From Prasinococcaceae sp. CCMP 1430 (Eukaryota > Plantae > Prasinodermophyta): a stretch of DNA of 63,257 bases. The translations under genes were made by a program, and so were the position numbers. The notes beneath the pieces were generated by a model. The model did not search any database and had not been told where the DNA came from. It saw only the letters and a program-made list of their open reading frames with translations. Location: NCBI GenBank assembly GCA_013416795.1, contig RQSC01001094.1:1-63257 (forward strand), in the 5' to 3' direction. This document shows, in pieces, positions 5,369 through 45,873 of the stretch; position 1 is the stretch's first letter, and each line of letters begins with the position of its first letter.

Positions 5369-6757
5369 CTACACGCTGCTGCTGGGTACGCCCGAGTCCT
5401 TGCCCTCGCCGCTTCCGGACTGCACACGCTCCGATGCGACCAGCGCACGGACGCGGTCGCTCGCCGAAGCTTCCAGCGCAGCCATGACGGCGTCAGCGTT
5501 GGCGATGGAGTCAAATGCCGAGTGGTGCGTGCGCTTGCCGATCCCTCCTCCAACCTCGACATTCATGTGACCCGACACGCCGGCGCCCTGCCCCGCCTTG
5601 GGCCAGCCCATCGTGATCACGCGGCGCACGAGCGTCGCGTCCGCGTCGACGCCCCATGACCGCATCCATGCCATCCACGCGTCGACGCTGTCATCGATTC
5701 GGGTCGAATCGTACTCGAATGCATCCAGGTCCTCAGTAGCGACTGTTTCGAAGTCGGTGAACCCAATACTGCGGAGGAAGTCGGCCTGAGAATCGCCGTG
5801 GTGCACCAGCTCGCGCGCCTGCGCCTCGGCCCAGGCGGGATCGATGTACACCTTGACGCCAGTTTTGCGCGCCATCCTGCGTTGCTTGCCGAAGTTGAAA
5901 CCCTCGTCGAGACAGTTATCGATCAATTTCCCGCTTGCGTCGACCATGTGCAGCGAGCTGTTGTGGACGATGCAGTCGCGAGCAAGGCACACGAGCCGCT
6001 CGAAGGGGTGCCTTCTCCACACATTGACCACCCGGGTGGTCTCCAGTGCTTCTGGGCTGAGGAACGTGTGGTGGAAAGCGTTGCGCGCGAGGTCGTAGTC
6101 CATGCGCTTGAACTTGGAGTAGTAGTGCTTGCCTTTCATCCGGTCTTGCGACACCCCATCCTTCAATTTCTTCTCGACAAGCGCCATCTCTGCCTTGGTG
6201 GCACGCCTGTCAATAGGGGGTTCTTCCCTGGCCTTCCAGTGCACCGCGTGCCGGTACACGTCCTTGATGCGCTCGGAGTAGCCGCCGTACGCAGCGATCC
6301 CGTGCGCCTTGAGGATGGCACGTGCCATGGATGCCGCCCACGAGGAGCCCGTGCAGTCCTCCATGAACAGCAAGAAATTGGCAAGCGCGAATTGCGGCGG
6401 CGGTGATGCCTTTGCTGACGCGCCCGCGACGGAGTCGTTCTTCGCTGCACCAGCCGCCTGGAGCGCCTGCGCCGCTTCACCTACGCCTGCGCTATCGCCG
6501 GCCACAGGACTGCTTTCCTCGGCCATCAACCGCGCCTCAACCTGACTCGTAAACACCGCCGCGTTGTGGGGTCCACCTGCGCTGCCGGTCGCGGCATCGG
6601 CGTTGCCAGCGCCGCTGCTCGCGGCGCCAAGGGCGCCCACACCGACGGCGGGCCTCGCGGCGGCCGCGGTCGCGGGAAAAAGCAGTAGCGGGGCCATCGC
6701 TACGATCGCGGCACGCCCGCACCCGCGCCATCGGAGGCAGCCCCTCGGCGTCGCCAT
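5369..6757 (-). CDS. Secreted/type II sulfotransferase-like protein (Stf0-like), copy A
   Basis: N-terminal hydrophobic signal (AAIVAMAPLLLFPATAAAA). Motifs in sulfotransferase order: FMEDCTGSSW (degenerate 5'-PSB), VVNVWRRHPFERLVC (3'-PB-like), VATEDL (YEDL-like), SIANADAVMAAL (Stf0-like C-terminal N..EV..AL). The coding region is reasonably confident; the family call is weaker. Confidence 0.5.
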   Translation of the reverse strand: MATPRGCLRWRGCGRAAIVAMAPLLLFPATAAAARPAVGVGALGAASSGAGNADAATGSAGGPHNAAVFTSQVEARLMAEESSPVAGDSAGVGEAAQALQAAGAAKNDSVAGASAKASPPPQFALANFLLFMEDCTGSSWAASMARAILKAHGIAAYGGYSERIKDVYRHAVHWKAREEPPIDRRATKAEMALVEKKLKDGVSQDRMKGKHYYSKFKRMDYDLARNAFHHTFLSPEALETTRVVNVWRRHPFERLVCLARDCIVHNSSLHMVDASGKLIDNCLDEGFNFGKQRRMARKTGVKVYIDPAWAEAQARELVHHGDSQADFLRSIGFTDFETVATEDLDAFEYDSTRIDDSVDAWMAWMRSWGVDADATLVRRVITMGWPKAGQGAGVSGHMNVEVGGGIGKRTHHSAFDSIANADAVMAALEASASDRVRALVASERVQSGSGEGKDSGVPSSSV

Positions 6758-7576
6758 CGTCGCCTCCGCGTGAGGGCGTTGATTTCTGTCTCCGTACGCG
6801 ATCCGCCAAGCAAACTTCCGCCACGACACCCAACACCCCTCGTTATGGCAAGGCACCCGGGCCAACGCCGCTAACCCCTCCCTGTCGTGCAAAGGAGCGC
6901 CCGGCGGGCAGCGGCACGGCGCGCTGCAGCCCGCGGCCGGTCGCGGCTCGGCGCCCCGCGCCGGCGCGGAGTCCCGCGGCGCGCGCTCAAAGTGGCGCCG
7001 CTCCCCCGAAATTTAAATCTTGACTCAAAGCGCGCAAGCCAAACAAACAGCGACGTCCTCGGAATCCGCGGCTGGCGATTAGCAGCCAGCGAGAGTTTTT
7101 CCGTTGAAACTTGANCCCGCGGCCCGCTGCGTGCGCGCCGGGGAGTAGCGCGGCGGGTGGCGCGCCCGCCAGCGCGCCCGCAGCTCTCGACGCCATCGTT
7201 TGGACGAAGGGCCAGAGCCGGGCGGCGCACTCAAGGAGGCACCCACCGCAGTGCGCGCGCGCGCGCGCCCGTGTGGCGCCCGCGTGTGCGCGCCGGCAAC
7301 CGCAACCGAATCTGCGCGGATAAGCGCCACCGCCCAATCAGAAGCACTGGCGGACGAACTCCCTGCAAGGCAGCATTCATTTTGATATGGGTCGAAGGTC
7401 GCACGTGCGTGCCTGTTTGACAATGTGGATGCCACAGAGTGGCTCTCTAGCTCTAGACACGAGACAGTCGCAAGCATTGCGGGGCATGCCACGCGCATGG
7501 TTGCAGCGCGCGCGCTGTACATTTGCGCCGAGGCGTGGCCTTGCGCGCCCGCACGGCGTGAAGATTCGTTTCTACG

Positions 7577-9032
7577 CTACACGCTGCTGCTGGGTACGCC
7601 CGAGTCCTTGCCCTCGCCGCTTCCGGACTGCACACGCTCCGATGCGACCAGCGCACGGACGCGGTCGCTCGCCGAAGCTTCCAGCGCAGCCATGACGGCG
7701 TCAGCGTTGGCGATGGAGTCAAATGGCGAGTGGCGCGTGCGCTTGCCGACGCCTCCTCCGATCGCGGCATTCATGTGACCCCACACGCCGGCGCCCTGCC
7801 CCGCCTTGGGCCAGCCCATCGTGATCACGCGGCGCACGAGCGTCGCGTCCGCGTCGACGCCCCATGACCGCATCCATGCCAACCACGCGTCGACGCTGTC
7901 ATCAATGTGGGCCGAATCGTACTCGAATGCATCCAGGTCCTCAGTAGCGACTGTTTCGAAGTCGGTGAACCCAATACTGCGGAGGAAGTCGGCCTGAGAA
8001 TCGCCGTGGTGCACCAGCTCGCGCGCCTGCGCCTCGGCCCAGGCGGGATCGATGTACACCTTGACGCCAGTTTTGCGCGCCATCCTGCGTTGCTTGCCGA
8101 AGTTGAAACCCTCGTCGAGACAGTTATCGATCAATTTCCCGCTTGCGTCGACCATGTGCAGCGAGCTGTTGTGGACGATGCAGTCGCGAGCAAGGCACAC
8201 GAGCCGCTCGAAGGGATGCCTTCTCCACACATTGACCACCCGGGTGGTCTCCAGTGCTTTCGGGCTGAGAAACGTGTGGTGGAAAGCGTTGCGCGCGAGG
8301 TCGTAGTCCATGCGCTTGAACTTGGAGTAGTAGTGCTTGCCTTGCATCCGGTCTTGGCTCACATCATCCTTCAATTTCTTCTCGACACGTGCTATCTGTG
8401 CCATGGTGGCATGCATGCTGGAACCTCTCTTCCAGTGCACCTCGTGCCGGTACACGTCCTTGATGCGCTCGGAGTAGCCGTCGTACGCAGCGATCCCGTG
8501 CGCCTTGAGGATGGCACGTGCCATGGATGCCGCCCAAGTCCTTGATGCGCTCGGAGTAGCCGTCGTACGCAGCGATCCCGTGCGCCTTGAGGATGGCATG
8601 TGCCATGGATGCCGCCCACGTGGAGCCCGAGCAGTCTTCCATGAACAGCAAGAAATTGGCAAGCACGAATTGCGGCGGCGGTGATGCCTTTGCTGACGCG
8701 CCCGCGACGGAGTCGTTCTTCGCTGCGCCCGCCTGGAGCGCCTGCGCCACCCCACCTACGCCTGCGCTATCGCCGGCCATAAGACTGCCTTTCTCGGCCA
8801 TCAACCGCGCCTCAACCTGACTCGTGAACACCGTCGCGTTGCGGGGTCCACCTGCGCTGCCGGTCGCCGCATGGGCGTCGCCAGCGCCGCTGGCCGCGGA
8901 GCCAAGGGCGCCCACACCGACGGCGGGCCTCGCGGCGGCCGCGGTCGCAGGGAAAAGCAGTAGCGGGACCATCGCTACGATCGCGGCACGCCCGCACCAG
9001 CGCCATCGGAGGCAGCCCCTCGGCGTCGCCAT
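7577..9032 (-). pseudogene. Stf0-like sulfotransferase-like protein, copy B, frameshifted by an 82-bp internal duplication
   Basis: Close paralog of 5369-6757, split into ORFs 8364..9032 and 7577..8755 by the tandem duplication at 8456-8619. Pseudogene or assembly error. Confidence 0.6.
8456..8619. repeat. 82-bp direct tandem duplication
   Basis: GTCCTTGATGCGCTCGGAGTAGCCG...GATGCCGCCCA starts at both 8456 and 8538. Copy A has only one unit. Confidence 0.95.
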
Positions 9033-9445
9033 CGTCGCCTCTGCGTGTGGGCGTTGACTTCTTTCTCCGTACGCGATTCGCCAAGCAAACTTCCGTCACG
9101 ACGACCAACACCCCTCTTTGTGGCAAGGCACCCGGGCCGACGCCGCTACCCCCACCCTGTCGCGCAAATGAGCGCCCGGCGGGCAGCGGCACGGCGAGCG
9201 GCAGCCCGCGCCCGGTCGCGGCTCGGCAGGCAGCGGGGGCGGCGGGCGCGGCGAGCATCGCGACGCGCCGCGGCGAATTTTCGCGCGCGCGGCGAATTTT
9301 CTCGCGCGCGGCGGATTTCGAATCGTTTGGGCGGCGCTGCCACACCGCGCACAAGGGACGGCGCAGCGCCGCCGCGCGGGCGCACAGACTCCGAACGTCC
9401 GCCCAATCCTCGCGCCCCCCATTTCCCCCCGCGCGCGCCTGTCCC

Positions 9446-11233
9446 ATGCCCATGCCATCGCGCCGCCGCCGTGGCTGCGCCGGTGGCGTAGCAGCACTGG
9501 CCGCACTGCTGCTACTCCCGGCATTGGGCGCGGTTGTGCTGCAACGCAAGGCCTTCACCGCGCTAGAGTTTACGCGCGGCAACAGGCGGCAGCAGCCGTC
9601 ACGGCGACGGCTGCAGGATGACGCGGGCGAGCGAGAGTCGCTGTGCAGCCGGCTCATGAAAAGGCTACAATGGATGCGAGCAGCTCGCAGCCAATACACT
9701 GTGTCTGATTCCATCGATGTGCAGAGCACGCTGACCAGCAAGGCTATTGACTTTGTGTTCTCCGAAACGTCCGAGGCTCTTGTTGATGCGCCACACGACG
9801 AGGATGCCATTATCAAGGCGTCTGAAGGAGGGGCTGGTGCCGACGCCGGCGCCGACGTCGACGTGAGCGCCGGTGCGTTTGCCATGCGCGCCGACGCCAG
9901 CAAGGCGGTGGCCGCCACTGCGGACAACGTCAGCGTGCTCGACCCGCGCTCCTACCAGTTGCTTGAGCCTGCAGAGTGCGACTCGACACGTGTGCAGCCC
10001 GCGAGTGCCGCCAAGGTGGCGTTCCTCTTCTTTTTGATGCACGCCAGCATGCCTGAGCGCATGTGGCGGGCATTCTTCGAGGGGGTGCCAAGTGAGCAGT
10101 ACCGTATCTACACGCACATCAATCCAGACTGTCCCACTTTCGCGAAGCCAGATCCGCACAACTGCACCTTCGGGCCGGGTTCTCTCTTCCACGGCACCGC
10201 GGTGAGGAATGTGCGCACAGGCGAGGTGCTGCGGATACGTACGGGGCGCTTCTCCTTCAGCCTCGTTCAGGTGGAGCGCTACATGCTCGCTCACGCCCTG
10301 AAGGACGACCCCCTCATCGACAGGTTCGTGCTGCTCAGCGAGAGTAGCGTGCCGATGTGGTCCTTCTCCGCCATCCGACGAGCGGTCATGCTGCAGCCTG
10401 CGATGATCAGCGCCATGAACGACTATTCGAAAGTGATTCACACGCTGCGGGAGCGACAGAGGACGAAATGGGCGCCTGGCAGGCTGGCCAATACGTGGTT
10501 CGAGACGGAGCGCAATAATGTTGCCGCGGCGTATCTAACTGGCACAACCGCCGAGTACAAGACTCTGGTGAGGGCCAACGAATGGGGCAAGAGTTCGCAG
10601 TGGTGGGCACTCACGCGGGCTGAGGCGTGCGCTGTGACCACCGACTGGAAAGTGACCGCGGCGCACGACAAGTCGTGCCATGATGGCGGCAGGTGTGCAG
10701 ACGATGGGACAGACCAGTACAACAACGACTCGTACTACCGCCAGCATGCTCCAGACGAATTCTACTTCCCCACGACCATTGCCCACTACGGCCTCGGCCG
10801 TGGCACAAGTTGCTTCAGTACCCACAACGGCATTTCGTTTCTCCCTATCGAAGGGGGGCATACGGCATCGTATGAAGGCGAGACGCGCTTGCAGGCGCAT
10901 CAGATTGCAACACTTCGCGAGTCGCACTGGAAGGAGGGCGCTATTGATTCGGAAAAAGACGACGACCCCGATCGAGAGGACGCGACTGTCGACTTGACTG
11001 CGCTCAACTCGCAAGAGTACCTCGACGAGTTCTTGCCCGAGCACGTGGCGAGGGGCAAGGGCTGTGACCTGCTCCGTGTGCGCACGATGTGCGGTCTCTT
11101 TGTGCGCAAGGTACCCTACTGGGAGGCAGACTACTATTACTTGGCGCTGAAGAGCGTGTGGAACACCAACGGCACGGGCTTCCCCGAGCCGAGTGGCCCG
11201 GGCTGGCCTTGCGCGTCCTTCTCGCAATACTAG
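9446..11233 (+). CDS. Core-2/I-branching (GT14-like, DUF266/Branch) glycosyltransferase, type II membrane
   Basis: Signal anchor [20 protein letters not shown]. Family motifs: KVAFLFFL, W.AFFEG, YRIYTH, SLVQVERYMLAHAL.DD...RFVLLSESSVP...FSAI, KSSQWWALTR.EA, APDEFYFPT. Confidence 0.85.
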   Translation: MPMPSRRRRGCAGGVAALAALLLLPALGAVVLQRKAFTALEFTRGNRRQQPSRRRLQDDAGERESLCSRLMKRLQWMRAARSQYTVSDSIDVQSTLTSKAIDFVFSETSEALVDAPHDEDAIIKASEGGAGADAGADVDVSAGAFAMRADASKAVAATADNVSVLDPRSYQLLEPAECDSTRVQPASAAKVAFLFFLMHASMPERMWRAFFEGVPSEQYRIYTHINPDCPTFAKPDPHNCTFGPGSLFHGTAVRNVRTGEVLRIRTGRFSFSLVQVERYMLAHALKDDPLIDRFVLLSESSVPMWSFSAIRRAVMLQPAMISAMNDYSKVIHTLRERQRTKWAPGRLANTWFETERNNVAAAYLTGTTAEYKTLVRANEWGKSSQWWALTRAEACAVTTDWKVTAAHDKSCHDGGRCADDGTDQYNNDSYYRQHAPDEFYFPTTIAHYGLGRGTSCFSTHNGISFLPIEGGHTASYEGETRLQAHQIATLRESHWKEGAIDSEKDDDPDREDATVDLTALNSQEYLDEFLPEHVARGKGCDLLRVRTMCGLFVRKVPYWEADYYYLALKSVWNTNGTGFPEPSGPGWPCASFSQY

Positions 11234-12173
11234 CTAGCTGGCCCCACTTCCGCGCGCGCTTGCACTATATAATGATTAAATGAATGCAGTTTGGCGCACC
11301 AGCGCAGATTCGCTTGCTTCCCCCCATCCCACCCCCCGCGCGCGTTGCAGCGCGTGCTGAGAGAGAGAGCCAGAGTACACCTTTGTGACAGGCATGCAAC
11401 CGAGCGGGGCGAGCAAGGTCGATCGTATAGAGTGGGTCCAACGGTCACATGCGTGCGTAACGGGAGTGCGCGATCCTTATCAAAGGGCGGTGGTCACTTT
11501 AAATGACGGTGCGCCGCTGCCGCTGCTGTGCTGAGAATCATCATGAGACCCTCTGACTGACACGGCAGATGCTGCGAGTCCGCCGGTCTCTCGTGCCGCC
11601 AGCCGCGGCACAGCGCGCGCGGCGTGCCCGCCTATCCTGCGGCGGCGGCGGCGTGGGAGTGCCGGGTGCGGCGCTCGCTCGCCGTCCGGCGGTTCCTGCG
11701 CCCGTGCGGCGCGCGCACCTCGCGGCCGCGGGGAGGGCGCGCGAGATTGACGCGCGGACGCGCGCGCGCCGGCGCTCGGCGTGGGCGCCGGCATGTGTGC
11801 GCCAGTCCCTTAGCTGCTCGATGGCAAAAAAAGCTCGCGAGAGCCACACGCGCGCTTGGGGGCGGGAGGGCGGATGGGGGCAGTCAGCGCGTCAATGCAG
11901 GCAGCGGCTGCCATCGCCACGAATCACGGCTGCGAGCGCTGTGAGTTGGCGGTATCGGATGCCGCTTCGCGGCATCATCGCGCGGGTCAACCCGTCAACG
12001 TTGGCAGAGGCTGCCAAGTGCTCCCTCGCGGGCTACTGGCGCAGCTCGCCGGTAGCAGCCACTCGTCTCGCGGCGCGCGCGCGCTGTGCGAGCTCCCCCC
12101 CCCTCCCCCCCCTTCCCCTTCCCTTCCCCCTGTCCTTCCCCCGTCCCGCCGGCGTGCTGCTCTCCGCTGAGCT

Positions 12174-13574: not shown

Positions 13575-13593
13575 GGTCGGACCGAGCGAACAG

Positions 13594-13614
13594 ACACACA
13601 CACACACACACACA
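13594..13614. repeat. (CA)n microsatellite
   Basis: ACACAC... run. Confidence 0.9.
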
Positions 13615-13968: not shown

Positions 13969-16401
13969 CTACCCGCCGAAACAACCGCACATAGGCTGCT
14001 TCTTCGGTGTAGGTGCCGGCGCGGGTTCCAATGGTTTCGGCGGCGGGGGCGGAGGCGGCGCGATCGCGGCCTCGTACGTCTCCCACAGCCCCACCTGCGC
14101 CCACGGCCCGCCGAAAGCCGTCATAGCAGCCTGCGACGAGACCCGTCCTGCGAATTGCGCCTTCGAGACCACGCCCGATGTATAGAGAGCCTTCATGGCC
14201 GCGCGGTCGCTGGGCAGCCCACACTTGTCCAGGAATTTGGCGAGCGCGCGCAGCTTGAGCATCTCAGACGCGCTAGGCGACCGACCTGCGTTCGGCGCCC
14301 TCTCCGCAGTCGCCTTGGGCGCCGTGCCTGCGCCGCCATCGGGGCGAACGTCAGCAGCAACGCGGCCGACGTCGGCCCCATCCAATCGCACGGCCTCCTC
14401 GGAGGCCCCCTCCTCCTCCTTCCCTGCCTCTTCCTCCGCCTCGACAACGGCCTCGGCAGCGTCGAGCGCCTTGCGCGCGTAGGGCCGCCAGAGCTCGCAC
14501 GCCGATACGTCCATGCCGAACGAGTGCAGCACGCCGCGCAGCAGCAGCACGAAACGCATGACCATCCACATCTGGCTGTCGAAGCCGATCTCCACGCTCT
14601 GGCCCAGCCCGCCCTGCGCGAAGGGCGAGGCGAGCGCGTCGTCCACCGCGCGCGTGTCGAACAGGATGTACGCCACGGTCACCGCCTTGTCCATGCCACC
14701 CGCGTCGCCGCCCATGCGCTGCTCCGCACCCTCCTTGAGGGTCACGTCCAGGCCCGCCGAAGCCATCGCATCCCGAATGGTAGCCTCGTCCCCTTCAGCG
14801 AGCATCTCAACCATGTTCGCGAACACTACGCGAATCTCGGGCGTGAGCACCTTGGTCTGACCGAAGTCTAGCAGCGCGAGCCGGCCGTCGCGCATCATCA
14901 TGAGATTGCCGGGGTGCGGATCAGCGTGGAAGACGCCGTCGACGAACATCGCATGGCCGTACGAGCGCAGCAGCTCGATGAGCGCCTCGGGCACCGCCTC
15001 GATCATGGCGCGCTCCTTGTCGCCGAGCGGCTCGCCGCCCGGCGCACTTTCGGCCTCCTTCGCGCGCAGCAGCGCTGAAAGGGGCTCGCCGTACACGCGC
15101 TCCATCACGAGGAGGCGCTCCGACGACACCGCATCCACGCACGCAGGCACGTAGATGGTCTTGTCGAAGCCCGCCGCGGACAGCGTGGCTTTGACGTGCT
15201 TCTGCATCTCGCGCTCGCGGTCGAAGTCGAACTCCAGCGGAATCTGCTTGAGGCTCTCTTCGGCGATGGGCATGATGTCCAGAGGCAGGTAGGGGCTAAT
15301 GAAACGCGCGACGCGCCGCAAGTTGAGCAAGTCTGCGCCGATGAGCGCCTCGAGTCCGCGGTGCTGCACCTTGATTACCACGTCCGTCGTAGGCGCGCCG
15401 GCGGCCTCGGCCACATCGGCGCGCAGCGTGGCGGCATGCACCTGCCCGATGGAGGCCGCCGCCAACGCCTCCTCGTCCACGCTCTCAAACACGTCGGCAG
15501 GCCCGACGGACTCCGCGCCGTCGCGGCCAAGCGGTGACATGAGCAGCTGCTCAGCGATCGAGAGCTCGACGTCGGTCCACGGGCGCGGCGGGTGCATGTC
15601 AAAGAGCACGTTGAGGCGCTCAATCCACTGCCGCGGCATGAATTCCCCCTTGGAAGCCATCACCTGCGCGGACTTCACATAGAAGCCACTCATCGCGAGG
15701 ACGAGCTCATACACCTTCTCGCCGCCCCACTCGTGCGTCTGGTCCCAGCGCGCGTGCCTCTTTTCTGCGGGCAGGCCACGCACCGCGCGTTGCACGCGGA
15801 TGTATCGCAGGAAGATGGGCATCATGCGCCGCCAGAACCCCAGCGCGCGGCGGTCGCCTGGCGAGAAGTGCGCGAGCATCCCCTCGAGCGCGAAGACGGC
15901 CGCCGCAGGCACGCTCAGCCACTTCATGCGCGCGTCTACCTCGGCGAGCGCGCGCTCGATGGGTGGCCCCGCGCCGCCGTCGTTGTATCCGGGCGTCCCG
16001 CCGCCGCCGCCGCCTCCGAGCATCTCGCAGATGCTCTTGCGGCAGGGCGGTGACGCCGCCATCGCCAGGATTGCCACCCCGCGCCACACGCGCGCAGGCA
16101 GCAGCGCCGACGCGCCAAAAAGCGCGCCCGAGCGCGCCGCGACGGATGCGCCGCGTCGCGCGAGCCGCGCGCCGAGCCGCATCGCGCCAGCAGCGGCGCT
16201 CGCGCGCCCGCGCGCCCCCGTGCCCCCCGCATCAGCAGCCTCGGCCGCATCCATGCCCTCCACCGCCGCCGCAGCTGCTACCTTCGCCAACCCCTCCATT
16301 GCGCACCCCACCGCTGCTGGGCGGCGGCAGAGTGGCATCCGTTCGCAGCGCTTCGGCCTGCCGCGCTGTCCTGCTGCTGCGGCTCGCGCGGCGGCGCCCA
16401 T
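13969..16401 (-). CDS. ABC1/UbiB (ABC1K) atypical protein kinase
   Basis: GFYVKSAQVMASK..F, ALAAASIGQVHAATL, VVIKVQH, EFDFDRE, LLVMERVYG, DGVFHADPHPGNLM, LALLDFGQTK. ATG at 16401 or 16290. Confidence 0.92.
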   Translation of the reverse strand: MGAAARAAAAGQRGRPKRCERMPLCRRPAAVGCAMEGLAKVAAAAAVEGMDAAEAADAGGTGARGRASAAAGAMRLGARLARRGASVAARSGALFGASALLPARVWRGVAILAMAASPPCRKSICEMLGGGGGGGTPGYNDGGAGPPIERALAEVDARMKWLSVPAAAVFALEGMLAHFSPGDRRALGFWRRMMPIFLRYIRVQRAVRGLPAEKRHARWDQTHEWGGEKVYELVLAMSGFYVKSAQVMASKGEFMPRQWIERLNVLFDMHPPRPWTDVELSIAEQLLMSPLGRDGAESVGPADVFESVDEEALAAASIGQVHAATLRADVAEAAGAPTTDVVIKVQHRGLEALIGADLLNLRRVARFISPYLPLDIMPIAEESLKQIPLEFDFDREREMQKHVKATLSAAGFDKTIYVPACVDAVSSERLLVMERVYGEPLSALLRAKEAESAPGGEPLGDKERAMIEAVPEALIELLRSYGHAMFVDGVFHADPHPGNLMMMRDGRLALLDFGQTKVLTPEIRVVFANMVEMLAEGDEATIRDAMASAGLDVTLKEGAEQRMGGDAGGMDKAVTVAYILFDTRAVDDALASPFAQGGLGQSVEIGFDSQMWMVMRFVLLLRGVLHSFGMDVSACELWRPYARKALDAAEAVVEAEEEAGKEEEGASEEAVRLDGADVGRVAADVRPDGGAGTAPKATAERAPNAGRSPSASEMLKLRALAKFLDKCGLPSDRAAMKALYTSGVVSKAQFAGRVSSQAAMTAFGGPWAQVGLWETYEAAIAPPPPPPPKPLEPAPAPTPKKQPMCGCFGG

Positions 16402-16439
16402 CCGCAGGCGCGGCTGCGCGGCAGTCGCGGCGGCGGCGA

Positions 16440-17178
16440 GCAACTACCAGCTCGACTTCGGTGGAGGAGTCGATGGTGGCGGTGGGCGCATCGTGTTTGT
16501 CGCAAGCGCACAAGCCAAGCACGACCTGGCGCCCTTGAAAGACCATTTCAACGACACAAACACACCATCCATCAGGGACATGCTTCAGGGATGGCATTCC
16601 GGGCATCGCGGGTCGCCTCATGCGTCGAAGAAACAGATCAAAAAATGCCGCAAAGCCGGCTTGCGAGCATGGTCGCGGGAGTGCATTGCACTCACCGGCG
16701 TGGACGACGCGCTCGCCGCCGCCGTCGCCGCCGGTGGTCTCTCGGGCATCACCACCGCCTCGCCTGGGTCTTTGCAGCCGGCAGAGCCTGCGGAGAAGGT
16801 CGTCCTGGTGCATACGCAGCGCGATCCGATAGCGACGGCCGTGTCAGGCATGATGTACTTCAACAAGAAACTTGCCCTGAATGCTGACGGGAAGATCGTG
16901 CGGTCTGACACCAACGAGCCACCCGATGCCGACGATGTGGTTGAGGCTTGCACGGAGAGCGCAGTACACATGGTGCTCTTCCATTGGGTCGCCACGCAAG
17001 CCCTGCCATCGCTGGGCTATGATGTGCGAACGTTCGAGTACGCCGACGAGCGCGGCACAACACGCGCATGGCTACGACAGCTTAGCGACGCGCTGGGACT
17101 GACCAGTATGCCCGAGTCAGCCATCGAGAGGGTCTGCGAGGAGATCGATCCAGACCGCATGCGCGCCTTGCAGAACGA
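16440..17178 (+). CDS. Sulfotransferase paralog fragment (copy 1; middle of gene only)
   Basis: Intact 3'-PB motif VVLVHTQRDPIATAVSGMMY. Homology to 18666 onward begins abruptly 39 bp from the ABC1 ATG and ends in the N gap. Confidence 0.7.
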
Positions 17179-17369
17179 NNNNNNNNNNNNNNNNNNNNNN
17201 NNNNNNNNNNNNNNNNNNNNNNNNNNNNNNNNNNNNNNNNNNNNNNNNNNNNNNNNNNNNNNNNNNNNNNNNNNNNNNNNNNNNNNNNNNNNNNNNNNNN
17301 NNNNNNNNNNNNNNNNNNNNNNNNNNNNNNNNNNNNNNNNNNNNNNNNNNNNNNNNNNNNNNNNNNNNN
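17179..17369. other. Assembly gap (191 N)
   Basis: Run of N. Confidence 1.
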
Positions 17370-18046
17370 CCCCCACCGCCGGCGGCAGGAGGGGCCGAAG
17401 CCGCAGCGGGCGGCCGATCGGCGGCCGCCGCTGCGGGCCCTAGAGCGAGCGAGGCGTCCCGCCCGGTGCGCTCGCTCGCTCTCGCGCGCGCCCGCGCATA
17501 TCCGCTCGCCGCGGATTCGGGGAACGGCGAACACTCGACGCTTCGCATCGCATTTCGGACGCGGCTTCCGCGCGTCGCGACGGGCCGACGCACATGTCCC
17601 GCCATCCGTCCCGAAAACGCGCGGCGACGCGTTCGCGCGCGCGAACCCCACGTTGCGCGCGAAACCCAATCCATATTTAAGGTATTTGATTTGGCACAAC
17701 GCCGTCGTGATGGTAAAAGAGCGTCTGCTGAGATTCCGCTCTCGAGAGATTGGATGCATAATAGGGTTCAAATTTTGGGACGCGCGAGCGAAGTTCGCGA
17801 CGATCCCGATGCCCCGCTCGCGCCGCGCGGTGCGGCTGTTGGAGATTTGAATTTTCGATTTTGGATCGTTGAAGGCGGTGCTTGTAAACCGACCGTCCAA
17901 ACGCGTACCGTACGACGCCCCCCACCCCGAGCTGCTGGGGAAGGGGGGGGGCACTGCGGGCGCCAGCGGGCGGGGCGCGGGGCGTGGAGGTGCCACTGCG
18001 CGCGTGGGGCCGTGGGTAGCGCCCCTCCTCATTCGGTCTGGGCGCG

Positions 18047-19705
18047 ATGGCGGCCGGCCGCGGCCGAGCGACGCGGACGGGTGGGCCCGCTGCGGGGCTG
18101 ATAGCGCTGCTCGCGCTGCTCACAGCGACGAAAGCCGCGGGGCGTGCGTCGGCGACTTTGGAGGGACGCACGGCGGCTGCTGTGGTTGATGGCGACATGC
18201 CCCCGCTGCGGCTCGCTCCGGAGCTCGCCCGTGCGCTCGCACAACCTGAGGGAGGTCAAGGTGAGACAGGAAGGACGCACTCGTGCGCGCCGCGTGCGCG
18301 TCTGGGCGTTAGCGCGCGTGGGGCGTTCACTGCGCCCCACGTCCGTGCGCGCGCGCACGCCACGGTGCCTTCGTGTTCTGAGTTGGACGGGCGAGTTCAC
18401 CAGTCAGCTTGCTCTAGCTCTGACTCGCTCCGTCGCCCGCACTGTGACTGCACGCGCGCAAATCCGTTTACCGCTGCACCTGCACCCATGCCTCGCCACA
18501 ACGCACACGCATGCGCAGGCGGGCGCAGAGATCGCGCCGTGCGCACGGTGATTCTGACGGACAGTAAGCCCAAGACCGGCACGACTGTTTTGGAATGGGC
18601 CGCCGCCGCGCTCTTGCGAGAGGCTGCCAAAATCCTGGAGAATGCAACCTTCAGCGATGAGTCCCGCAACTACCAGCTCGACTTCGGTGGAGGAGTCGAT
18701 GGTGGCGGTGGGCGCATCGTGTTTGTCGCAAGCGCACAAGCCAAGCAGCTGGACCGCGGGAACTTTCTGGTAAAGTTGCTGTGTTTGTGTGGTAGGTAGT
18801 CCAAAATGCTTACGGGGCATCATTCGTCGCGTCATTCGTCGAAGAACAATATCAATAAGTGCCCCAAAGCCGGCTTGCGAGCATGGTCGCCGGAGTGCAT
18901 TGCACTCACCGGCGTAGACGACGCGCTCGCCGCCGCCGACGCCGCCGGTGGTCTCCGGGGCATCACCACCGCCTCGCCTGGGTCTTTGCAGCCGGCAGAG
19001 TCTGCGGAGAAGGTCGTCCTGGTGCATACGCAGCGTCTAGGCTATCGCTGCCGGCACAGTCCGTACTACATGAAGTTGTTCTTTGAACGGGTGAATGCTG
19101 ACGGGAAGATCGTGCGGTCTGACACCAACGAGCCACCCGATGCCGACGATGTGGTTGAGGCTTGCACGGAGAGCGCAGTACACATGGTGCTCTTCCATTG
19201 GGTCGCCACGCAAGCCCTGCCATCGCTGGGCTATGATGTGCGAACGTTCGAGTACGCCGACGAGCGCGGCACAACACGCGCATGGCTACGACAGCTTAGC
19301 GACGCGCTGGGACTGACCAGTATGCCCGAGTCAGCCATCGAGAGGGTCTGCGAGGAGATCGATCCAGACCGCATGCGCGCCTTGCAGAACGAGATCAACT
19401 CAGGCCACAAGCGTTCGGGCGGTCAGCACTACGCCGGCTTGGGCGGGAGCGGAGGGTCGGCCAACAAGCGCAAGGTTGCCACGGCGAGCGCGCGCGCCTA
19501 CGAGACGCAACTCTCGCCCGACGTGGTCGCACGCTGCAAGGCCGCGGCGGCATTCCACCTGCCGCGTGACCTCGCCGAGTTGTACTACGGGGAGGAGGAC
19601 GAAGAAGCGCCGCTGCCTCGAGCGACTACCTCGGGCTCTACTTTCTTATCGACCCTCGGTCGGAGTCAACAATGCGCTAGGTTCGGCCTAGGATATATCC
19701 GTTAG
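18047..19705 (+). CDS. Secretory-pathway sulfotransferase (P-loop, PKTGTT), copy 2; apparent stop at 18797 and scrambled 3'-PB motif arise from complemented blocks
   Basis: Signal peptide GLIALLALLTATKAAG, 5'-PSB VILTDSKPKTGTTVLEW (about 18569), FEYADE, ERVCEEI, and a C-terminal LSPDVVARC...AFHLP. ORFs 18047..18799 and 18806..19705 are in the same frame. Possible intron from GTGAGA 18261. Confidence 0.75.
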
Positions 19706-19919
19706 ACTATATACAGTACAGTACGTTTTTCCGTTCCAGAATGATCATTTGTTTGTACGAAAGAACTGCTCTTTTTGGCGCCAAATTGTATCAGTCTATG
19801 GTTACCGTTTCCGTTTCTAAGGATGACCGTCCGGGGATTTCGGGCCAAAAAGGATGACCTTCCTGGGAAAATCGCGTGTGAGTCCTCAACGTCGATAAAG
19901 ATGCTCCATTGTCGCGGTC

Positions 19920-20638
19920 GTGCGGCTGTTGGAGATTTGAATTTTCCGCCACGAACATTTGGCTGGCAGGTTTGCGCATGGCATGCTGCGGGGGGTGGGG
20001 CTCGCGCTGGGGAAGGGGGGGGGCACTGCGGGCGCCAGCGGGCGGGGCGCGGGGCGTGGAGGTGCCACTGCGCGCGTGGGGCCGTGGGTAGCGCCCCTCC
20101 TCATTCGGTCCNCGTGCGGTCTGACACCAACGAGCCACCCGATGCCGACGATGTGGTTGAGGCTTGCACGGAGAGCGCAGTACACATGGTGCTCTTCCAT
20201 TGGGTCGCCACGCAAGCCCTGCCATCGCTGGGCTATGATGTGCGAACGTTCGAGTACGCCGACGAGCGCGGCACAACACGCGCATGGCTACGACAGCTTA
20301 GCGACGCGCTGGGACTGACCAGTATGCCCGAGTCAGCCATCGAGAGGGTCTGCGAGGAGATCGATCCAGACCGCATGCGCGCCTTGCAGAACGATATCAA
20401 CTCAGGCCACGAGAGTTCGGGCGGTCAGCACTACGCCGGCTTGGGCGGCGGACCGGGCGGAGAGTCGAACAACAACATGCGCAAGGTTGCCACGGCGAGC
20501 GCGCGCGCCTACGAGACGCAACTCTCGCCCGACGTGGTCGCACGCTGCAAGGCCGCGGCGGCATTCCACCTGCCGCGTGACCTCGCCGAGTTGTACTACG
20601 GGGAGGAGGAGCTTCTTCGCGGCGACGGAGCTCGCTGA
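19920..20638 (+). CDS. Sulfotransferase paralog, copy 3 (5' flank plus 3' half; middle missing at N 20112)
   Basis: 19920-20110 matches 17830-18037; 20113-20638 matches 19111 onward; ends EELLRGDGAR*. Confidence 0.7.
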
Positions 20639-20969: not shown

Positions 20970-23045
20970 ATGCGGGGCGTCGGGCTGCGGCGCGCCACAG
21001 CGGGTGCGCTGGGGTGGGGCGGGCGCGAGCGGCCCGCACAGCGCACCGCGGAGGGAGGGGGCACGGGACATCGCGTAGCTCCGTCCCGCGGGATGGGCAC
21101 GGCTGCCCGGAGTGGCGCGGGGCGCTGCGATGGCGGCGTTGGCCCGCGCACCCGCGCGGTGCCCTCCGCGGTTTTCGTCCGCTTTCGTGCCCTCGTCCTC
21201 GTCGTCAATGCGGCGCTCGCGCTCCTGAGCCTGGTCCCGCCGGCTGAAGGTGTTGGCGGCACGCGGCGTTCGGATCCGAGCCTGCGGGAGCTCGAGGGGC
21301 GCCTCGAAGGAAAGGTGTCTGACCACGCGGTGCGTCGTGCCGAGGCCGTTCCGGGTGGTTCGAGACGCCGGCAGCGAGGAGAGCGAAACGATGGCGTGGC
21401 CGCCAGCGACTGGTGGCCCGAGGAGGGCGACTGCTCGGCGATGCTTGCCGGTCTCGCCTCGGTCCACGTTCGAAGCAACTACCTGTCTGCGAGCGGCGAA
21501 GAGGGCGGCGATGCGAAGAATGTTGTGCAAGAAGGGTTCATGCCTGTGTCGTTCGAGCCTCGGCACTTCGTGTGTGATGCGCACCGCGCGAGGGGTGCGC
21601 TGCTGTCGGCCGAAGCGCACGACTGGCCTAGTGCTGCGCGCGACAAGGCCACCGGTGCCGCGGTAGTGCGCGCCGCCGACAGTGCCAGCGTGTTCAGCGG
21701 CGCGAAGAGCGGCGGCGGCAGTGCCAGTACTGGGGACGAGGCCGAGCGGGCGCTCATATATTGGATGCATGAGCGCAAGGCGGGCGGTGACCTCGTCAAG
21801 GGGTGCATGAACGTGCCGACGAAAGGTCATAACTTTGGTTTTTACGGCAAGGATGAGGAGATACCATTCGGGCGGCAAGAGTACTGTAACCGGTCGCAAT
21901 CACTGCTCGCGAACACCTCCGCGTTGACGGTCGTGACCGAGTACTTTGCGCCGCCGGTGATGTGCATGCACGACGAGGCGGTGATGCGACACACGAGCTT
22001 CGTGGCCGTCGTACGCCACCCACTCTTCCGCTGGCAGAGCGAGCTTTCATGGAGTTCGGCAATCGCAAAGCTCGATGGCGTTTGGCAGCTTTTTGCGGAG
22101 GAGCCTCCCCCGCTTGGCGGATGCGAGCCGGGCCGCCCTTGCACCGGGTCTGGTGGCATACGAGAATACCTGCAGCCCGGCAAGCTCAGCCCGAGGTCAC
22201 GCGAGCGCATCAGCGACGCGCAGCTCGAGGCGGCCATGCGTTCCCTGCGCTCCTGGATGGATAACACCTGGGATGGAGGAAAACGTTGCAGGGATATGCG
22301 AGACAAAGACATGAAAGCAGCAGGCCCGCGAGACAAGGCTCTGTCGAGGGCTGGGCATATCACAGAAAGCTGCTACATTGACAATTATCTCGTGCGTCTT
22401 CTGTCACAGAATTGCTCCTGCGATGTTGGTTTGCTTCAGACGGCGAGGCGTGCATCCAGCGACACACTTTACCTCCACACTAACCGCGACGGGTGCGAAA
22501 TCAACTATCACCGCCGGGTGACGTACGAGGATTTCCTGCTGGCACGGCAAGCTGCGGCTTCATTCAACGCACTTGTTCCACTCGAGCGTCTCCAGTGCGA
22601 CGCGAAGCGGGTGTTCGCACTCCTGGGTGGCAACACCGGCGCGTCGATGCACCCTGACTTCTCGCTCCCGTCGGGCAGTCACGTCAGCACGCTGGAGATC
22701 CGCGTACTGGAGGTGCCGGAGCTTCGCGCGATGCTCGAGGCGGACAACATGTACGACCTGGTGAGTCTGCGCTAGCGGCGGGCGCTGCGGCGCCCACCCA
22801 TCCGATGACAACAGACTGACTGACTGAGTGCGCCGCACGCGCGCATCGAGTGCGCTGACACATCGCTGCTCATTCCCGACGCCAACGCGTCTCGCTGCTC
22901 CGCGCATGCGGCCCCCCGCACGCGCGCACAGATGCTCTACGAGTGGATTTCCCAGGAGCTCTATCCGAGCTACTTCTGCGAGCCGCCCCTCGTGTCGCCG
23001 GCGCTCGATCCCAACGCCCGAAATGCGCTCGGGCGCTCGCGCTGA
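20970..23045 (+). CDS. Type II membrane sulfotransferase (Sulfotransfer_2-like), 2 exons
   Basis: Anchor FVRFRALVLVVNAALALLSLV, IYWMHERKAGG (5'-PSB), FVAVVRHPLFRWQSE (3'-PB). Intron 22761-22931 (GTGAGT...CAG) restores the C-terminal N.YDL.LYEW motif. Confidence 0.75.
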
Positions 23046-23599
23046 TGGCGCCGCGAGGATCTGCGCGTACCCCACCACACGGCTTTTCAAGTACAGTAGT
23101 GCTAGTACGAAGTACAGTAACCAGCGACTCTGCGCTGATGCGCAAAAGTGCATTCATTCTGCTTATGTCTACGGCCGAAATCGAAATCGAATTGGAATTG
23201 CAACGCAATGTGGCGCCAACACCCGCGCGCGAGCGAAGGTCAATATGCATTTGAATTCGAGTAGGCGCGACGGCGCCGACGGCCACACCGCGCGCGCATG
23301 GCGGCGGCGGCGGCCACCGCAGCGTACAGCGCCCTCGCTGCCACGCACGCAGGGTTCGTGGCCCGGGCGGCGGCGCGCGTGTGGTCGGGTAGGGGAACTT
23401 TTTTTTTGCGCGGCAGCAGCGATCGGCTAGTCGGCGTGCAGGGAGAGGCACGCAGACATCGGTCGCTCGAGCTTGGGTCGCGCTGGGCACCGCCCGAGCC
23501 GCGTGCGCGGCAGTAGCTCGCGGTATGCGGGCGTTGGAGGCTCATGCGGACGGCCCGCGCCTCGCGCGATGCGCGCGATGCGGCTTCTCTCGCCTCGCA

Positions 23600-25000
23600 A
23601 TGTACGGCGCTGCGCTCGTGCTACTCGCATTGACGACAGGCACGCTCTTGGCGTCGCAGAGGCAGGTGGGTAAGAACAGAGATGCCCGCGCGGGCATCGA
23701 AAGCAGAAGTTCGCACCGCCTCCTATTGGGAATGGGAGGGCCTGAGATCTCATCGCGCAGAGACAGTCGTGGCGGCTGGACCACCGACTCCGTCCTGCCC
23801 CACGCGCGTAGCGAAGGGGACATTCTGGCCTTCGTCGCAGTATTCACTGGCTTTGGCGAAAGCTCCGCTGCTCGACGAGCCAACTTGCGCGCGACGTGGT
23901 TCCCGGCCTCGCGTGACGCGCTGGCCAAATTTGAAGAGAGACACAGCATCGCCATGCGATTCGCTGTAGGGGATGCCGATGCGAGCGCACCAGTAGGTAA
24001 CATCACAGCGCAGGAAGCCGAAGCAGCGCTGCAAGCAGAGGTCGACATCTATGGAGGCTTCATGCGCATGCACGGCGTTACGGAGCGCTACAGCAATTTG
24101 CCTCACAAAACGCGCACCTTCTTCGCGTCTGCAGCGCGCCACCCGCTGCTGTCGCGGGCGCAGTGGCTGGTGAAGATTGATGACGACGTGTACGGTGCGT
24201 CGGGCAGGACAATGCGCCGGTCGCCAGCGCGTGGCTGCCAGTGGCGTTGAGCTCGCCACGCCGTGCACTTGCCAGAATGTCCGGATCTATCCATCTCGCA
24301 ATCGGATTTGTGATCATCTCTGACTGTCCTGCTCACAGTCATACCTCGCAACCTAAACGCAGTGTTGCGCCGGCACACTCCTGCGTCGGGTGCAGAGCAG
24401 CGCATTTACCTCGGGGTCGTTAAAGCGGGTGATATTTACCGCCCCGGCCATGAGGGCTGGGGGAGCAAGGTGCGCTCGCTTAGCAACGCCTTTCAGAGCG
24501 GTGGCCAGCCCCGTCGTCGTGCCCGATCTGAGCGGCGCCTGCAAGCAGCTGACGCGCATGCGCCATGCCCTGCGCGTCAAGTGGGTGGAGCCAAGCTGGG
24601 GGCTGCTCGCGTCGCAATACTATCCGAACTGCTTCGGTACCGCCTACGCCGTGTCACAAGCAGCTGCTGCTCAGTTGGGATCGTTTGCCGGCTCGGCGCT
24701 TCGGTATCTCGCGAATGAAGATACGATGATGGTGCGCACGCGCACGCCCGCATGCGCACGCGCTCGTGCGTGCGCGTTCTAACACGCACGCACGCGCGCA
24801 CGCACGCGCGCGTTCACACCCAGGGACTGTGGAGCATTGCGTTCGGCTGGGACATGGTGAACGAGCCGGACCTGGGTAGGGCGCGGTGCGGCGAGGGCGC
24901 AGCGGTGGTGTACGAAGTATGGGAATGCGCGGGGCTCTGCCACCCGGAGAAAGATATGTCCGCTCTACATGCCAATTCCTCGTGCAACTTGGACTCGTGA
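23600..25000 (+). CDS. GT31 beta-1,3-galactosyltransferase (AGP/hydroxyproline GalT-like), about 4 exons
   Basis: Anchor MYGAALVLLALTTGTLL, VAVFTGF...RRANLRATWFP, RFAVG, ERYSNLPHKTRTFF, WLVKIDDDVY (DxD), IYLGVVKAG, W.EP...YYPNCFGTAYAVS, LANEDTMM/GLW, and a Cys-containing tail CAGLCHPE. Introns start GTGCG. Confidence 0.9.
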
Positions 25001-25861
25001 ACATAGCCACGCACTCTTACCATCGCACCCCTCGACTATCGTTTGTGACCACCGCCACCGCCCTCATACCATTGAACTCATCTCTCGACTATCGTTTCCT
25101 CTCAGTATACACGGGGCGCATCCCCGCGCGCGTCCGGTCTCCCTCTCCCATAGCTACTGTAGCTATGCTGCTCAAAATGTAACACCCCGCGGAAAATTTT
25201 GGGTGCGAAAATCAAATTTGAGGCGAACAGGCGGCTCGACGCTGTACCCGTCTCCCCCTGTGCGGGGGAAGGGGGGGGGTACTGGGTCGACCGTTATCGC
25301 AATTGGACGTGGAGAAGTCGATCGTGAGCCGCGGCGCTGCGGCTCTGCCTCCTCCCCGCCCTGCACGGCCTCTGCCGTGCCGAGCCGCTCGGCGCTCGCT
25401 GCGCGCCGAGTGGCGCTCTGCTGCCAACTCTCGCTCTCAATTATACAGTTTCGCCGGTGGGCAGCACTTGTGCAAGTGTAGGCTAGGGCGTGGCGCTGGC
25501 CGGGGTGTGCCGCGGGGGCCTTTTCTGGCAATGTAGAGACATGGTTACGAGTCCTTCGCGGCCGCGCGACCAGTCGCGCGTGGCCTCGCTTCAGGGCCCC
25601 CTCCGTAGTAGCCACGTCGGCAATCCTGTACAGTAGGACTTTTTAGTAGTCTCGGACTATGCATCGAGATGATGGCCGTTCGCTCGGTGTGCGAGGCTCA
25701 GGATGCGAGCCTGCGAGTGCGTGCGGCCAGCTGGCAGGTCCACAGCGCGCGCACCCGGCGGCGCCTCCCCGCCCGGCCCGCCCCCCCGCGCGCCGCCACC
25801 CCTGTCCATGCGTCGAAGGCGCCGCGCTGGGTAAAGAGCGGCGTTGGTTGGCGTTGAGTGG

Positions 25862-27094
25862 ATGGGTCCTGCGGCGAGGGCGCGCCCGCGTCAGCGCCGC
25901 GGTTTGCGGGGGCGGCGGCGGGGCGAGGGGAGAGCGGCGGCAGCGGCGGTGGCGGCGGCCCTCATGCTGGCCTGTGACGCCGCCGTCGTGAGAGCTCACT
26001 TGAGCGACGCGGCGCTCCTGGCCCTGGCGGCACGCTACGACGAGACGCGCGCTCTGGCGCTGCGTGCGGCGGCCGAGGGCGGCGCCTCAGGGCGCGGCGT
26101 CGGGTGGCTGCACATACCTAAGTGCGGGACCGCTTTCGGCGTGGCGCTGTACCACTACGCGTGCCGGCGGTAGGGACGCTTACGGTGGTGGGAGGGTACG
26201 CCGTCGTTTAACGGGTTGCGTACGAAACCAAACTGCAGGATCCAATCTGAGACGGTGCCGTACGCGAACGGCGAGGGCAGGCGCCCTCTTCGCCAGGGAT
26301 ATCCGGTCGGCAGAATACATAGCGACCTCGTGGACGGCTATCCAATGGCCAGGTGGTGCCCGCGCGCGCGCTTTGCCAATGTCAAAGGGGATCACACACC
26401 GTACATTTTGCTGCGCAGAAAGGCCAGGCACGAAGGCAACGCAGGCGTGGCCTGGGCCACCATGCTGCGTCGGCCCAAGCAGCGCCTCTTGAGCGCCTAC
26501 GGCGCGGGGTTGCACGCCATGAGGATGTCCAAGGACTACGCATTCGCTATGTACGCGCTCGTGGAGACGCCGCTCATGTTTGCGCGCGTGGGGGGCGTGG
26601 CGGGTTGCCAGACGAAATCCTTACTGGACAAGCACTGCGGGCAGAGAGGCGAGCGCAGGGACGGGCTGCGGCGTGGGGATGTCGCCAGGGCGAAGCGCGT
26701 GCTCGCCGAACAGTTCACGTATTTTGGGATTACGGACAGGTGCGCAATCCAAGAGTGGGCGCAGATAGACACGCGTTGTGTGCAAGCGTCGCGCTGCCGA
26801 GGCCCTGACCGCCGCCGCCGGCGCGCCCGCAGGTGGCAAGAATCTATTGCGCTGTGGCATGCCGTGGTCGGGACACCTGCTCCGCCCGAGCAGCTCGCCG
26901 TCGAGCTCATGGACAGCAGGCACACGCCCTCGAACGGCTTCGACGCGCGCGAGCAAGTGGACGTTGGATCGCAGGCGAGGCGCTACGACGAGTCGGCGCT
27001 TGACGGCTTCGAGGACGAGGCGGACGAGGAGGTCTACAGGTTCGCGGAGTTCGAGAAGCTCCGCTCCGAGCGCGCGAAGTTGCAGTGCCAGTGA
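25862..27094 (+). CDS. Type II membrane sulfotransferase (Sulfotransfer_2/Gal3ST-like), about 3 exons
   Basis: Anchor AAAAAVAAALMLAC, VGWLHIPKCGT (5'-PSB), ATMLRRPKQRLLSAY (3'-PB), FTYFGITDR/WQESIALWH, and D.ADEEVY..A. Confidence 0.8.
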
Positions 27095-45790: not shown

Positions 45791-45873
45791 GATTTTGATT
45801 TTGATTTTGATTTTATTTATTTTTATCGTGTTCGTGTGTGTTTGAGCGCGTGCGCTCTTGCCTCAGAACAAGG

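Follow-up and report, generated by a model that had tools for sequence, protein, structure and literature searches.

A lineage-specific neighbourhood of candidate glycan-modification enzymes in the green alga Prasinoderma coloniale

A 63,257-nucleotide stretch of algal DNA (contig RQSC01001094.1 of assembly GCA_013416795.1, deposited as Prasinococcaceae sp. CCMP 1430; the whole stretch is called the window below) carries six distinct predicted secretory-pathway glycan genes within nine consecutive genes. Two of them encode glycosyltransferases (GTs) of families GT14 and GT31, and four encode sulfotransferase (ST)-like proteins of separate sequence types, designated A to D. Once assembly artefacts are subtracted, the set spans ~17.9 kb from the stop of the type A gene, A1, to the stop of D. 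It is read here, with slightly better than even confidence, as a lineage-specific glycan-modification neighbourhood of six enzymes and therefore as a candidate, not a demonstrated, biosynthetic gene cluster. A first-pass annotation of the same DNA had described a physically clustered, non-homologous enzyme set that included seven ST-like loci. The non-random neighbourhood is borne out by Tara Oceans scaffolds and by the numbering of published P. coloniale genes (PRCOL), but it holds fewer genes than claimed, and the seven reported ST loci are four genes. The neighbourhood is genuine and lineage-specific, if smaller than first described; the function proposed for it is plausible yet unproven.

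The window is assigned to Prasinoderma coloniale because the type C protein it encodes matches PRCOL_00003922 of the EukProt P. coloniale set at 100% identity across 555 residues, and because GT31 exon 1 is likewise 100% identical to PRCOL_00003921 (P0185). Its G+C content is ~67% and its introns are few. The published P. coloniale genome comprises 25.3 Mb with 69.8% GC, 7,139 genes, and 83 GTs (PMC7455551). None of the enzymes for cellulose, mannan, xylan, or xyloglucan were found in that genome, and the text of the genome paper makes no mention of sulfotransferases (PMC7455551). P. coloniale is thick-walled and colonial even though the usual wall-polymer enzymes of plants went undetected in its published genome.

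Gene order and gene content of the neighbourhood

Independent sequence collections support the neighbourhood. PRCOL_00003921 (GT31) and PRCOL_00003922 (type C) bear consecutive numbers in the published gene set and are thus neighbours there. One Tara Oceans scaffold (L001) carries a GARP gene followed by a single A1 and then GT14, and a 13.3-kb scaffold from the same sample (L018, 98% identical to the window) carries the order ABC1-B-C-GT31-D. The two scaffolds overlap at window positions 11389-11585, and their combined order is GARP, A1, GT14, a weakly coding stretch, ABC1, B, C, GT31, D. In four further Tara samples (L019-L022), B-C is present throughout and GT31 accompanies it in three. Logan DNA contigs show zero differences from the window across positions 21095-25473. 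Gene order is the same across the scaffolds of several ocean samples at 95-98% identity. All scaffolds that match the neighbourhood are 95-99% identical to it and for this reason are taken to come from the same species, not from relatives.

Chance alone accounts poorly for this arrangement. Random gene placement would be expected to yield 5e-6 to 2e-3 runs per genome with six or more GT or ST genes among nine; the estimate takes 83 GTs and 7,139 genes from the published genome (PMC7455551) together with 20-200 ST-like genes, and it is a rough bound in that the ST number is assumed. The neighbourhood departs strongly from random gene placement. Its limits are also as first reported: the first-pass annotation found no such genes in the other 40 kb, and Pfam searches of the ORFs (open reading frames) there returned no ST or GT gene. 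Those ORFs instead match kinase, oxidoreductase, prenylcysteine lyase, two ERV/ERGIC, WD40, Vps53, HAD, TTL, WAPL, ABM, and Dof models. A six-frame motif scan of the window found no additional contexts for the motifs that bind 3'-phosphoadenosine-5'-phosphosulfate (PAPS).

The surroundings are ordinary. Housekeeping genes lie on both sides of the neighbourhood, with no transposons and no strong compositional breaks. Coding G+C is 0.62-0.65 in five of the six glycan genes versus 0.66-0.74 in neighbouring housekeeping genes, and the former range also falls below the published genome mean of 69.8% (PMC7455551).

Glycosyltransferases and sulfotransferase-like families

Both GTs are identified by profile. 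GT14 matches PF02485 (Branch) at 64-65 bits against a cutoff of 23.4, covering profile positions 1-207 of 250, and its counterpart in L001 matches the same model; the predicted membrane anchor occupies residues 15-33. Exon 1 of GT31 (23525-24194) covers profile positions 1-92 of Galactosyl_T with 38.7 bits (cutoff 23), and a later exon adds 16.8 bits over positions 129-180. The DDD motif of GT31 (KIDDDVY) lies at 24173-24193. Both family assignments of the first-pass annotation therefore stand, with the start of GT31 at 23525. RNA coverage of GT31 is thin (23863-24161 and 24823-25222) and falls to zero at 24295-24694, so its exon borders are approximate.

One GT31 intron (~24735-24823) is a high-copy simple repeat. 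Window positions 24695-24894 hold a CA/CG-rich simple repeat at which contig depth rises to ~900-1000, compared with ~40-70 elsewhere, and many contigs break there. When the published GT31 model (PRCOL_00003921, P0185) is set against window positions 24700-24830, a conserved, ED-containing Galactosyl_T segment (LANEDTMM) turns out to be spliced out. The published gene model is probably imperfect.

A shared topology is predicted for the whole set. In each of the six distinct glycan proteins, an Arg-rich tail precedes a 19-residue hydrophobic peak (Kyte-Doolittle 1.5-2.5) that falls inside residues 1-51. These N-terminal segments fit signal anchors, in agreement with the earlier call of a signal peptide or type II anchor.

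Types B, C, and D retain the hallmarks of PAPS binding. Type B carries KPKTGTT as its 5'-phosphosulfate-binding (5'-PSB) motif and RDPIATAVS as its 3'-phosphate-binding (3'-PB) motif, type C carries the 5'-PSB-like HERKAGGD and the 3'-PB motif VRHPLFRWQS, and type D carries WLHIPKCGT (5'-PSB) and RRPKQRLLSAY (3'-PB) followed by GCQTKSLL and FGITDRWQES. The 5'-PSB Lys is kept in all three (PKTGTT, ERKAGGD, IPKCGTA), as is the 3'-PB Arg with a Ser eight residues on (RDPIATAVS, RHPLFRWQS, RRPKQRLLS). In a protein atlas, the neighbours of type B are exclusively Sulfotransfer_1/3 clusters (score 0.96, 175-184 shared features) and those of type C are Sulfotransfer_2/Gal-3-O clusters (0.95, 177-181 shared features), and the named matches of both are sulfotransferase families only. 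This supports B and C as ST-like proteins. The assignment of D as ST-like rests on its conserved motifs, and both PAPS motifs are kept in homologues 34-61% identical to it (IPKCGSS, IPKTGST). The D motif series resembles that of HS6ST and other Sulfotransfer_2 enzymes.

C and D are transcribed. The catalytic half of type C is strongly conserved in 70%-identical paralogues. The introns of C (22760-22930, 171 nt, GT..AG) and D (93 nt) are each spliced in two RNA data sets. Transcripts of C and D, and weakly of GT31, turn up in both of these sets, with depths that differ widely. A scan of JGI metagenomes with the type C alignment found zero relatives. Two independent DNA data sets reveal about ten single-base variants, present at about half depth, in the 5' part of D (26046-26288), and no such variants occur across C. 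This pattern suggests two haplotypes or a collapsed paralogue.

Type A was linked to the sulfotransferases at the level of fold by structure prediction. A1 has a P-loop, DCTGSS (window 6340-6358), and a 3'-PB-like motif, RRHPFERLVC (window 5990-6020). A word-indexed search with type A recovered close relatives only, and an exhaustive HMMER search recovered 55 homologues at E<1e-3, none of which carries a Pfam sulfotransferase domain. An AlphaFold2 model built from a 46-sequence alignment reached a predicted local distance difference test (pLDDT) score of 85.6 and a predicted template-modelling (pTM) score of 0.85; a single-sequence run gave a pLDDT of 39. Against the PDB, Foldseek ranked sulfotransferases on top of the list for this model, but weakly, with P-loop kinases intermixed. 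VIA-align gave Z 10.5 to tyrosylprotein sulfotransferases (TPSTs) across residues 7-338, over 250 residues, and Z 9-10 to many sulfotransferases across the whole domain; adenylate kinases reach residues 15-261 only. A fold search of the ESM Atlas returned an Stf0-family cluster at template-modelling (TM) scores of 0.52/0.65. Among AFDB clusters, the best match was 'Sulfotransferase (Fragment)' (E 3e-15, TM 0.65) and the second an Stf0-domain protein (E 4e-5), and nearly all named matches were sulfotransferases. The model can confidently be assigned an Stf0/TPST-like sulfotransferase fold. The label Stf0-like, given to this type in the first pass, thus holds at the level of fold, while no hidden Markov model (HMM) match backs it and the catalytic Lys/Arg and Ser are absent.

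The four types do not resemble one another. Comparison of family alignments with hhalign found no similarity between A and C or between D and C, and on this ground the ST-like types are regarded as distinct and not as recent duplicates of each other. The earlier description of four unrelated sequence types at these places is upheld. The type A and type C families are multi-copy in the lineage, as judged from their paralogues, and other stretches of the same genome carry ST-like genes too. Scaffolds L003, L005, L015, and L016 were considered as orthologous loci in other species with lost synteny, an idea that was rejected when the gene in L016 proved to be PRCOL_00002826, a paralogue from the same species.

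Assembly errors and the corrected gene count

The count of seven ST loci was inflated by errors of the assembly, which are documented by scaffolds L001, L004, L015, and L018. Table 1 lists the features as they stand in the window.

Table 1. Genes and artefacts of the neighbourhood, with positions in the window
Feature	Position	Strand	Basis
Type A1, 462 aa, predicted secreted or type II	5369..6757	-	Intact ORF; single copy beside GT14 in L001
Type A2 block (gene 7577-9032)	7116..9227	-	93-95% identical to A1; N at 7115 just before
GT14 (Branch), predicted type II glycosyltransferase	9446..11233	+	PF02485, E 1e-17; next to A1 in L001
ABC1 atypical kinase, not a glycan gene	13969..16443	-	Pfam PF03109, E 9e-43; same position in L018
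Artefact: internal B fragment 16440-17178, then N gap 17179-17369	16440..17369	+	L018; fragment 100% identical to later copies
Type B, intronless, 526 aa, predicted type II	18047..20638	+	Intact ORF in L004, L018; P0156 full-length
Type C, 593 aa, predicted type II	21093..23045	+	Two exons, 21093-22759 and 22931-23045; PRCOL_00003922 (P0093)
GT31 (Galactosyl_T), predicted type II, multi-exon	23525..25000	+	Pfam; = PRCOL_00003921
Type D, ~380 aa, predicted type II	25862..27094	+	Intron 26740-26832; conserved motifs

Five blocks of 53-61 nt (17872-17932, 18750-18802, 19033-19089, 19600-19660, and 26166-26220) have been replaced by their plain, not reverse, complement. Scaffolds L004, L011, and L018 supply the true sequence, and each block matches the complement of that sequence at 98-100% identity. 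In genes B and D, the blocks give rise to spurious stops and 'introns'. Three of them (18750-18802, 19033-19089, 19600-19660) break B as assembled, and the apparent stop of D at 26171 lies inside the block at 26166-26220. RNA contigs have the true letters at 26200-26220, and DNA and RNA contigs both break at 26165. A 69-nt in-frame intron of D at 26170-26238 was entertained and ruled out, the stretch being a plain-complement artefact. Such blocks are a systematic fault of this assembly and are probably present in other parts of the genome.

The array of PKTGTT-type genes reported at 16440-20638 dissolves into one intact gene in L004 and L018. The three 'PKTGTT' copies in the window are ~100% identical outside the complement blocks, and the two scaffolds (95-98% identical) hold a single intact B ORF between ABC1 and C. 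In L018, ~56 nt bridge window position 16438, in the region upstream of ABC1, and position 17370, after which an intact B leads into C, GT31, and D. The window itself has a chimeric join at 16439/16440, where the 5' end of ABC1 is fused onto an internal B fragment. An ORF at 15800-17443 is spurious, in that the letters flanking the N gap do not form one frame (L018). The 3' part of B is present twice, at 19111-19705 and 20113-20638, with a single N at 20112; positions 19600-20112 are a duplicated overlap.

The second Stf0-like copy, A2, also appears to be out of place. Its frame is shifted by an 84-nt internal tandem duplication, which is absent from an A2-type MMETSP transcript (L002) that is 98-99.9% identical. 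In Tara scaffold L015, an A2-type gene sits between Lipase_3 and GSIII (glutamine synthetase III) genes, and homology ends exactly at window position 7116. A2 is probably a paralogue whose true place is another locus and which mis-scaffolding brought here; a real insertion in the sequenced strain is a less likely alternative. At window positions 9225-9281, ~217 nt that separate A1 from GT14 in L001 are missing. In this reference assembly, complement blocks and duplicated fragments have thus produced false pseudogenes and false tandem arrays.

Two genes had been reported to interrupt the set. The ABC1 kinase is confirmed by Pfam, whereas the 'hypothetical gene' at 11.5-13.9 kb contains no ORF with coding composition.

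Several further genes of the window deserve mention. Two ERGIC/ERV (ERV41/46-type) genes for ER-Golgi cargo vesicles stand tail to tail at 39487-40761 (+) and 41075-42597 (-), and a gene for Vps53 of the GARP complex lies at 45811-48735 (+), in the same window as the predicted Golgi enzymes. Their proximity may be coincidence. By eye only, an ORF at 2074-2943 (+) looks carboxylesterase type B-like and one at 37410-38615 (-) looks M1-peptidase/TAF2-like.

Interpretation and comparison with known systems

The proposed scheme takes the six products to be type II enzymes of the Golgi. A wall or matrix glycoprotein or polysaccharide would carry a galactose-containing glycan that GT31 and GT14 build or branch. 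Sulfate would be added to that glycan at different positions by B, C, and D, in which the PAPS-binding Lys, Arg, and Ser are canonical, and A might sulfate it through a non-canonical site or be a non-catalytic relative. We infer that a single sulfated polymer, galactan or arabinogalactan protein (AGP)-like, would be the product because of the roles of GT31 and GT14 in plants and the common Golgi topology. In plants, enzymes of both families work on one polymer class, type II arabinogalactan (PMC13213038). Protein tyrosine or some other glycan is an equally possible acceptor. A more ambitious version of the scheme, in which the genes form a co-regulated cluster for a sulfated Prasinoderma wall or colony-matrix glycan that includes type A as a new sulfotransferase-fold family (~55 homologues, no Pfam model), is doubtful.

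A number of observations weigh against a shared sulfation pathway. The first concerns the identity of the ST-like proteins. Pfam, NCBIfam, and PHROGs were searched for sulfotransferase models (Pfam Sulfotransfer_1/2/3/4/5, Sulphotransf/Stf0, and Gal-3-O_sulfotr), and none matches A-D or their homologues, even at E<=10; the Branch and Galactosyl_T models, which the first-pass annotation had named alongside them, both match above cutoff. Sequence and profile searches of PDB chains found nothing relevant for any ST-like type. The support for B and C is protein-language-model similarity, not alignment, and that for D is motifs only. In type A, the P-loop of the family reads G-C-S-G-S-[ST], with an invariant Cys in place of the catalytic Lys/Arg (~40 homologues), and the second motif reads R-x-N-x-L-D-x-L-x-C-x-V-R-D-C-F, in which the Arg is kept and an invariant Cys replaces the 3'-PB Ser (~40 homologues). 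The closest type A structures are protein-tyrosine sulfotransferases, not carbohydrate sulfotransferases. The second concerns the coherence of the set, which is broken up by an unrelated gene, the ABC1 kinase, and by a 2.7-kb stretch with little coding signal. In one data set, RNA depth is uneven (C ~42, D ~14, GT31 0-5). Elsewhere, A and C paralogues and D homologues occur singly among unrelated genes (L003, L005, L015, L016).

The silence of the profile libraries on A-D is a limit of sensitivity and not evidence of absence, given the evidence from fold (A), atlas neighbours (B and C), and motifs (D). Surveys by HMM or BLAST have counted 1-4 carbohydrate sulfotransferases in Mamiellales genomes (PMC4659905), and such low counts imply that divergent ST-like genes escape standard annotation. 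Entire algal families of this kind are overlooked by standard HMM annotation.

The active site of type A is open to two readings. In canonical sulfotransferases, the catalytic Lys and the 3'-PB Ser are in mutual contact. Because the residues they replace touch in this way, the two invariant Cys of type A might form a disulfide. On its modelled fold, type A is a candidate sulfotransferase that has either a non-canonical site or no catalytic role. If type A belongs to the pathway, its Cys pair in place of the catalytic Lys and Ser implies either a novel mode of catalysis or a pseudo-enzyme with a regulatory role.

Co-location without a common pathway is possible, though on the unlikely side. The six would then be unrelated Golgi enzymes with acceptors of different kinds (protein tyrosines, lipids, N- or O-glycans), gathered by local gene gain in a permissive region with no selection for togetherness. 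The interruptions of the set, the very unequal RNA depths, and the TPSTs as the best structural matches of type A would all fit such a history, as would four ST types that come from different subfamilies with no detectable mutual similarity. The solitary relatives also fit: C paralogues (PRCOL_00002826, ~69% identical) and an A paralogue stand at L016 3075-4793, L003 374-2152, and L015 10001-11380 beside DnaJ, ABC transporter, MOSC, lipase, and GSIII genes, which means that the A, C, and D families do not need a neighbourhood of this kind. The low expectation of six in nine under random placement, the same predicted topology in all six proteins, and the type II arabinogalactan shared as a polymer class by plant GT31 and GT14 (PMC13213038) stand against it.

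An improbable alternative is that the locus, in the manner of prasinophyte outlier chromosomes rich in glyco-genes (PMC13213038; bioRxiv 10.64898/2026.02.10.705097), is a fast-evolving island of surface-glycan variation driven by viruses or grazers, and not one fixed polymer pathway. Its ST families are too divergent for any HMM library, close paralogues exist (A1/A2 at 93-95%, C at 70%), the type A variants are mosaic, and the nearest clusters of types A and C in the protein atlas are viral. The half-depth variants in D in two DNA data sets and the lowered coding G+C in five of the six genes are in keeping with this alternative. The housekeeping flanks, the lack of transposons and strong compositional breaks, and the identical gene order in several ocean samples at 95-98% identity are not. 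It is very improbable, and already largely refuted, that the whole neighbourhood is an artefact in which contigs of similar genes were wrongly scaffolded, as at least five complement blocks, the chimeric joins at 16439/16440 and 20112, the misplaced A2, and the N gap might suggest, since L001, L018-L022, and the Logan contigs independently give single-copy A1-GT14 and ABC1-B-C-GT31-D and since L001 and L018 overlap.

As a glycan-modification neighbourhood, the locus offers a compact test set of six genes. Prasinoderma is a member of the green-plant phylum that diverged first, and through this locus the question of how green plants acquired sulfated and arabinogalactan-like glycans could become directly testable. 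Prasinococcus capsulatus produces a sulfated polymer, capsulan.

Individual enzymes of the set have recognizable relatives. The plant AGP enzymes, GT31 galactosyltransferases and GT14 glucuronosyltransferases, fall in the same CAZy families by Pfam and share the type II Golgi topology, a likeness at family level only. To our knowledge, sulfation of land-plant AGPs by dedicated neighbouring genes is not known. Animal Golgi sulfotransferases (HS6ST, HS2ST, CHST; Sulfotransfer_2) are like C and D in type II topology and in the order and spacing of the 5'-PSB (H-x-P-K-x-G) and 3'-PB (R-x-P-x-x-R-x-x-S) motifs. Animal tyrosylprotein sulfotransferases have a fold like that of type A, which differs in the absence of the catalytic Arg/Lys and Ser. 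The genes of animal sulfotransferases are dispersed, and they show no HMM-level similarity to the P. coloniale types.

Bacterial clusters for sulfated exopolysaccharides, such as the synechan (xss) cluster of Synechocystis, likewise place several STs and GTs side by side for one sulfated extracellular polymer (PMC8205485). These clusters are operon-type and include Wzx/Wzy polymerisation and export genes and regulators (PMC8205485), none of which is present at the P. coloniale locus.

Closer parallels come from other algae. Brown algae have a conserved cluster of a sulfotransferase and FK-GFPP (bioRxiv 10.1101/2024.04.23.590721), which, like the P. coloniale locus, links a carbohydrate sulfotransferase candidate with sulfated-glycan genes and owes its functional assignment to position. 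The brown-algal cluster is kept across brown-algal orders and contains one sulfotransferase, the bifunctional FK-GFPP (GDP-fucose salvage), and hydrolase genes, whereas the P. coloniale locus has four different ST-like genes and two GTs, has no precursor gene, and is known from one species. The small outlier chromosome of Ostreococcus has four physically clustered GTs and is enriched in sulfotransferases (bioRxiv 10.64898/2026.02.10.705097), and Pseudoscourfieldia has glyco-gene-rich outlier chromosomes (PMC13213038). As in P. coloniale, these are green-lineage picoalgae in which GTs and STs for surface glycoconjugates accumulate locally and belong to lineage-specific, poorly annotated families. 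The outlier chromosomes are low-GC, repeat-rich, and hypervariable; the P. coloniale locus has housekeeping surroundings, its GC content drops only slightly, and wild samples agree on its gene order. The earlier statement that such clustering is not described for green algae was too strong in view of the Ostreococcus chromosome (bioRxiv 10.64898/2026.02.10.705097). Brown algae and Ostreococcus already provide published examples of comparable ST or GT neighbourhoods, and the P. coloniale locus joins them as a candidate from the earliest-diverging phylum of green plants.

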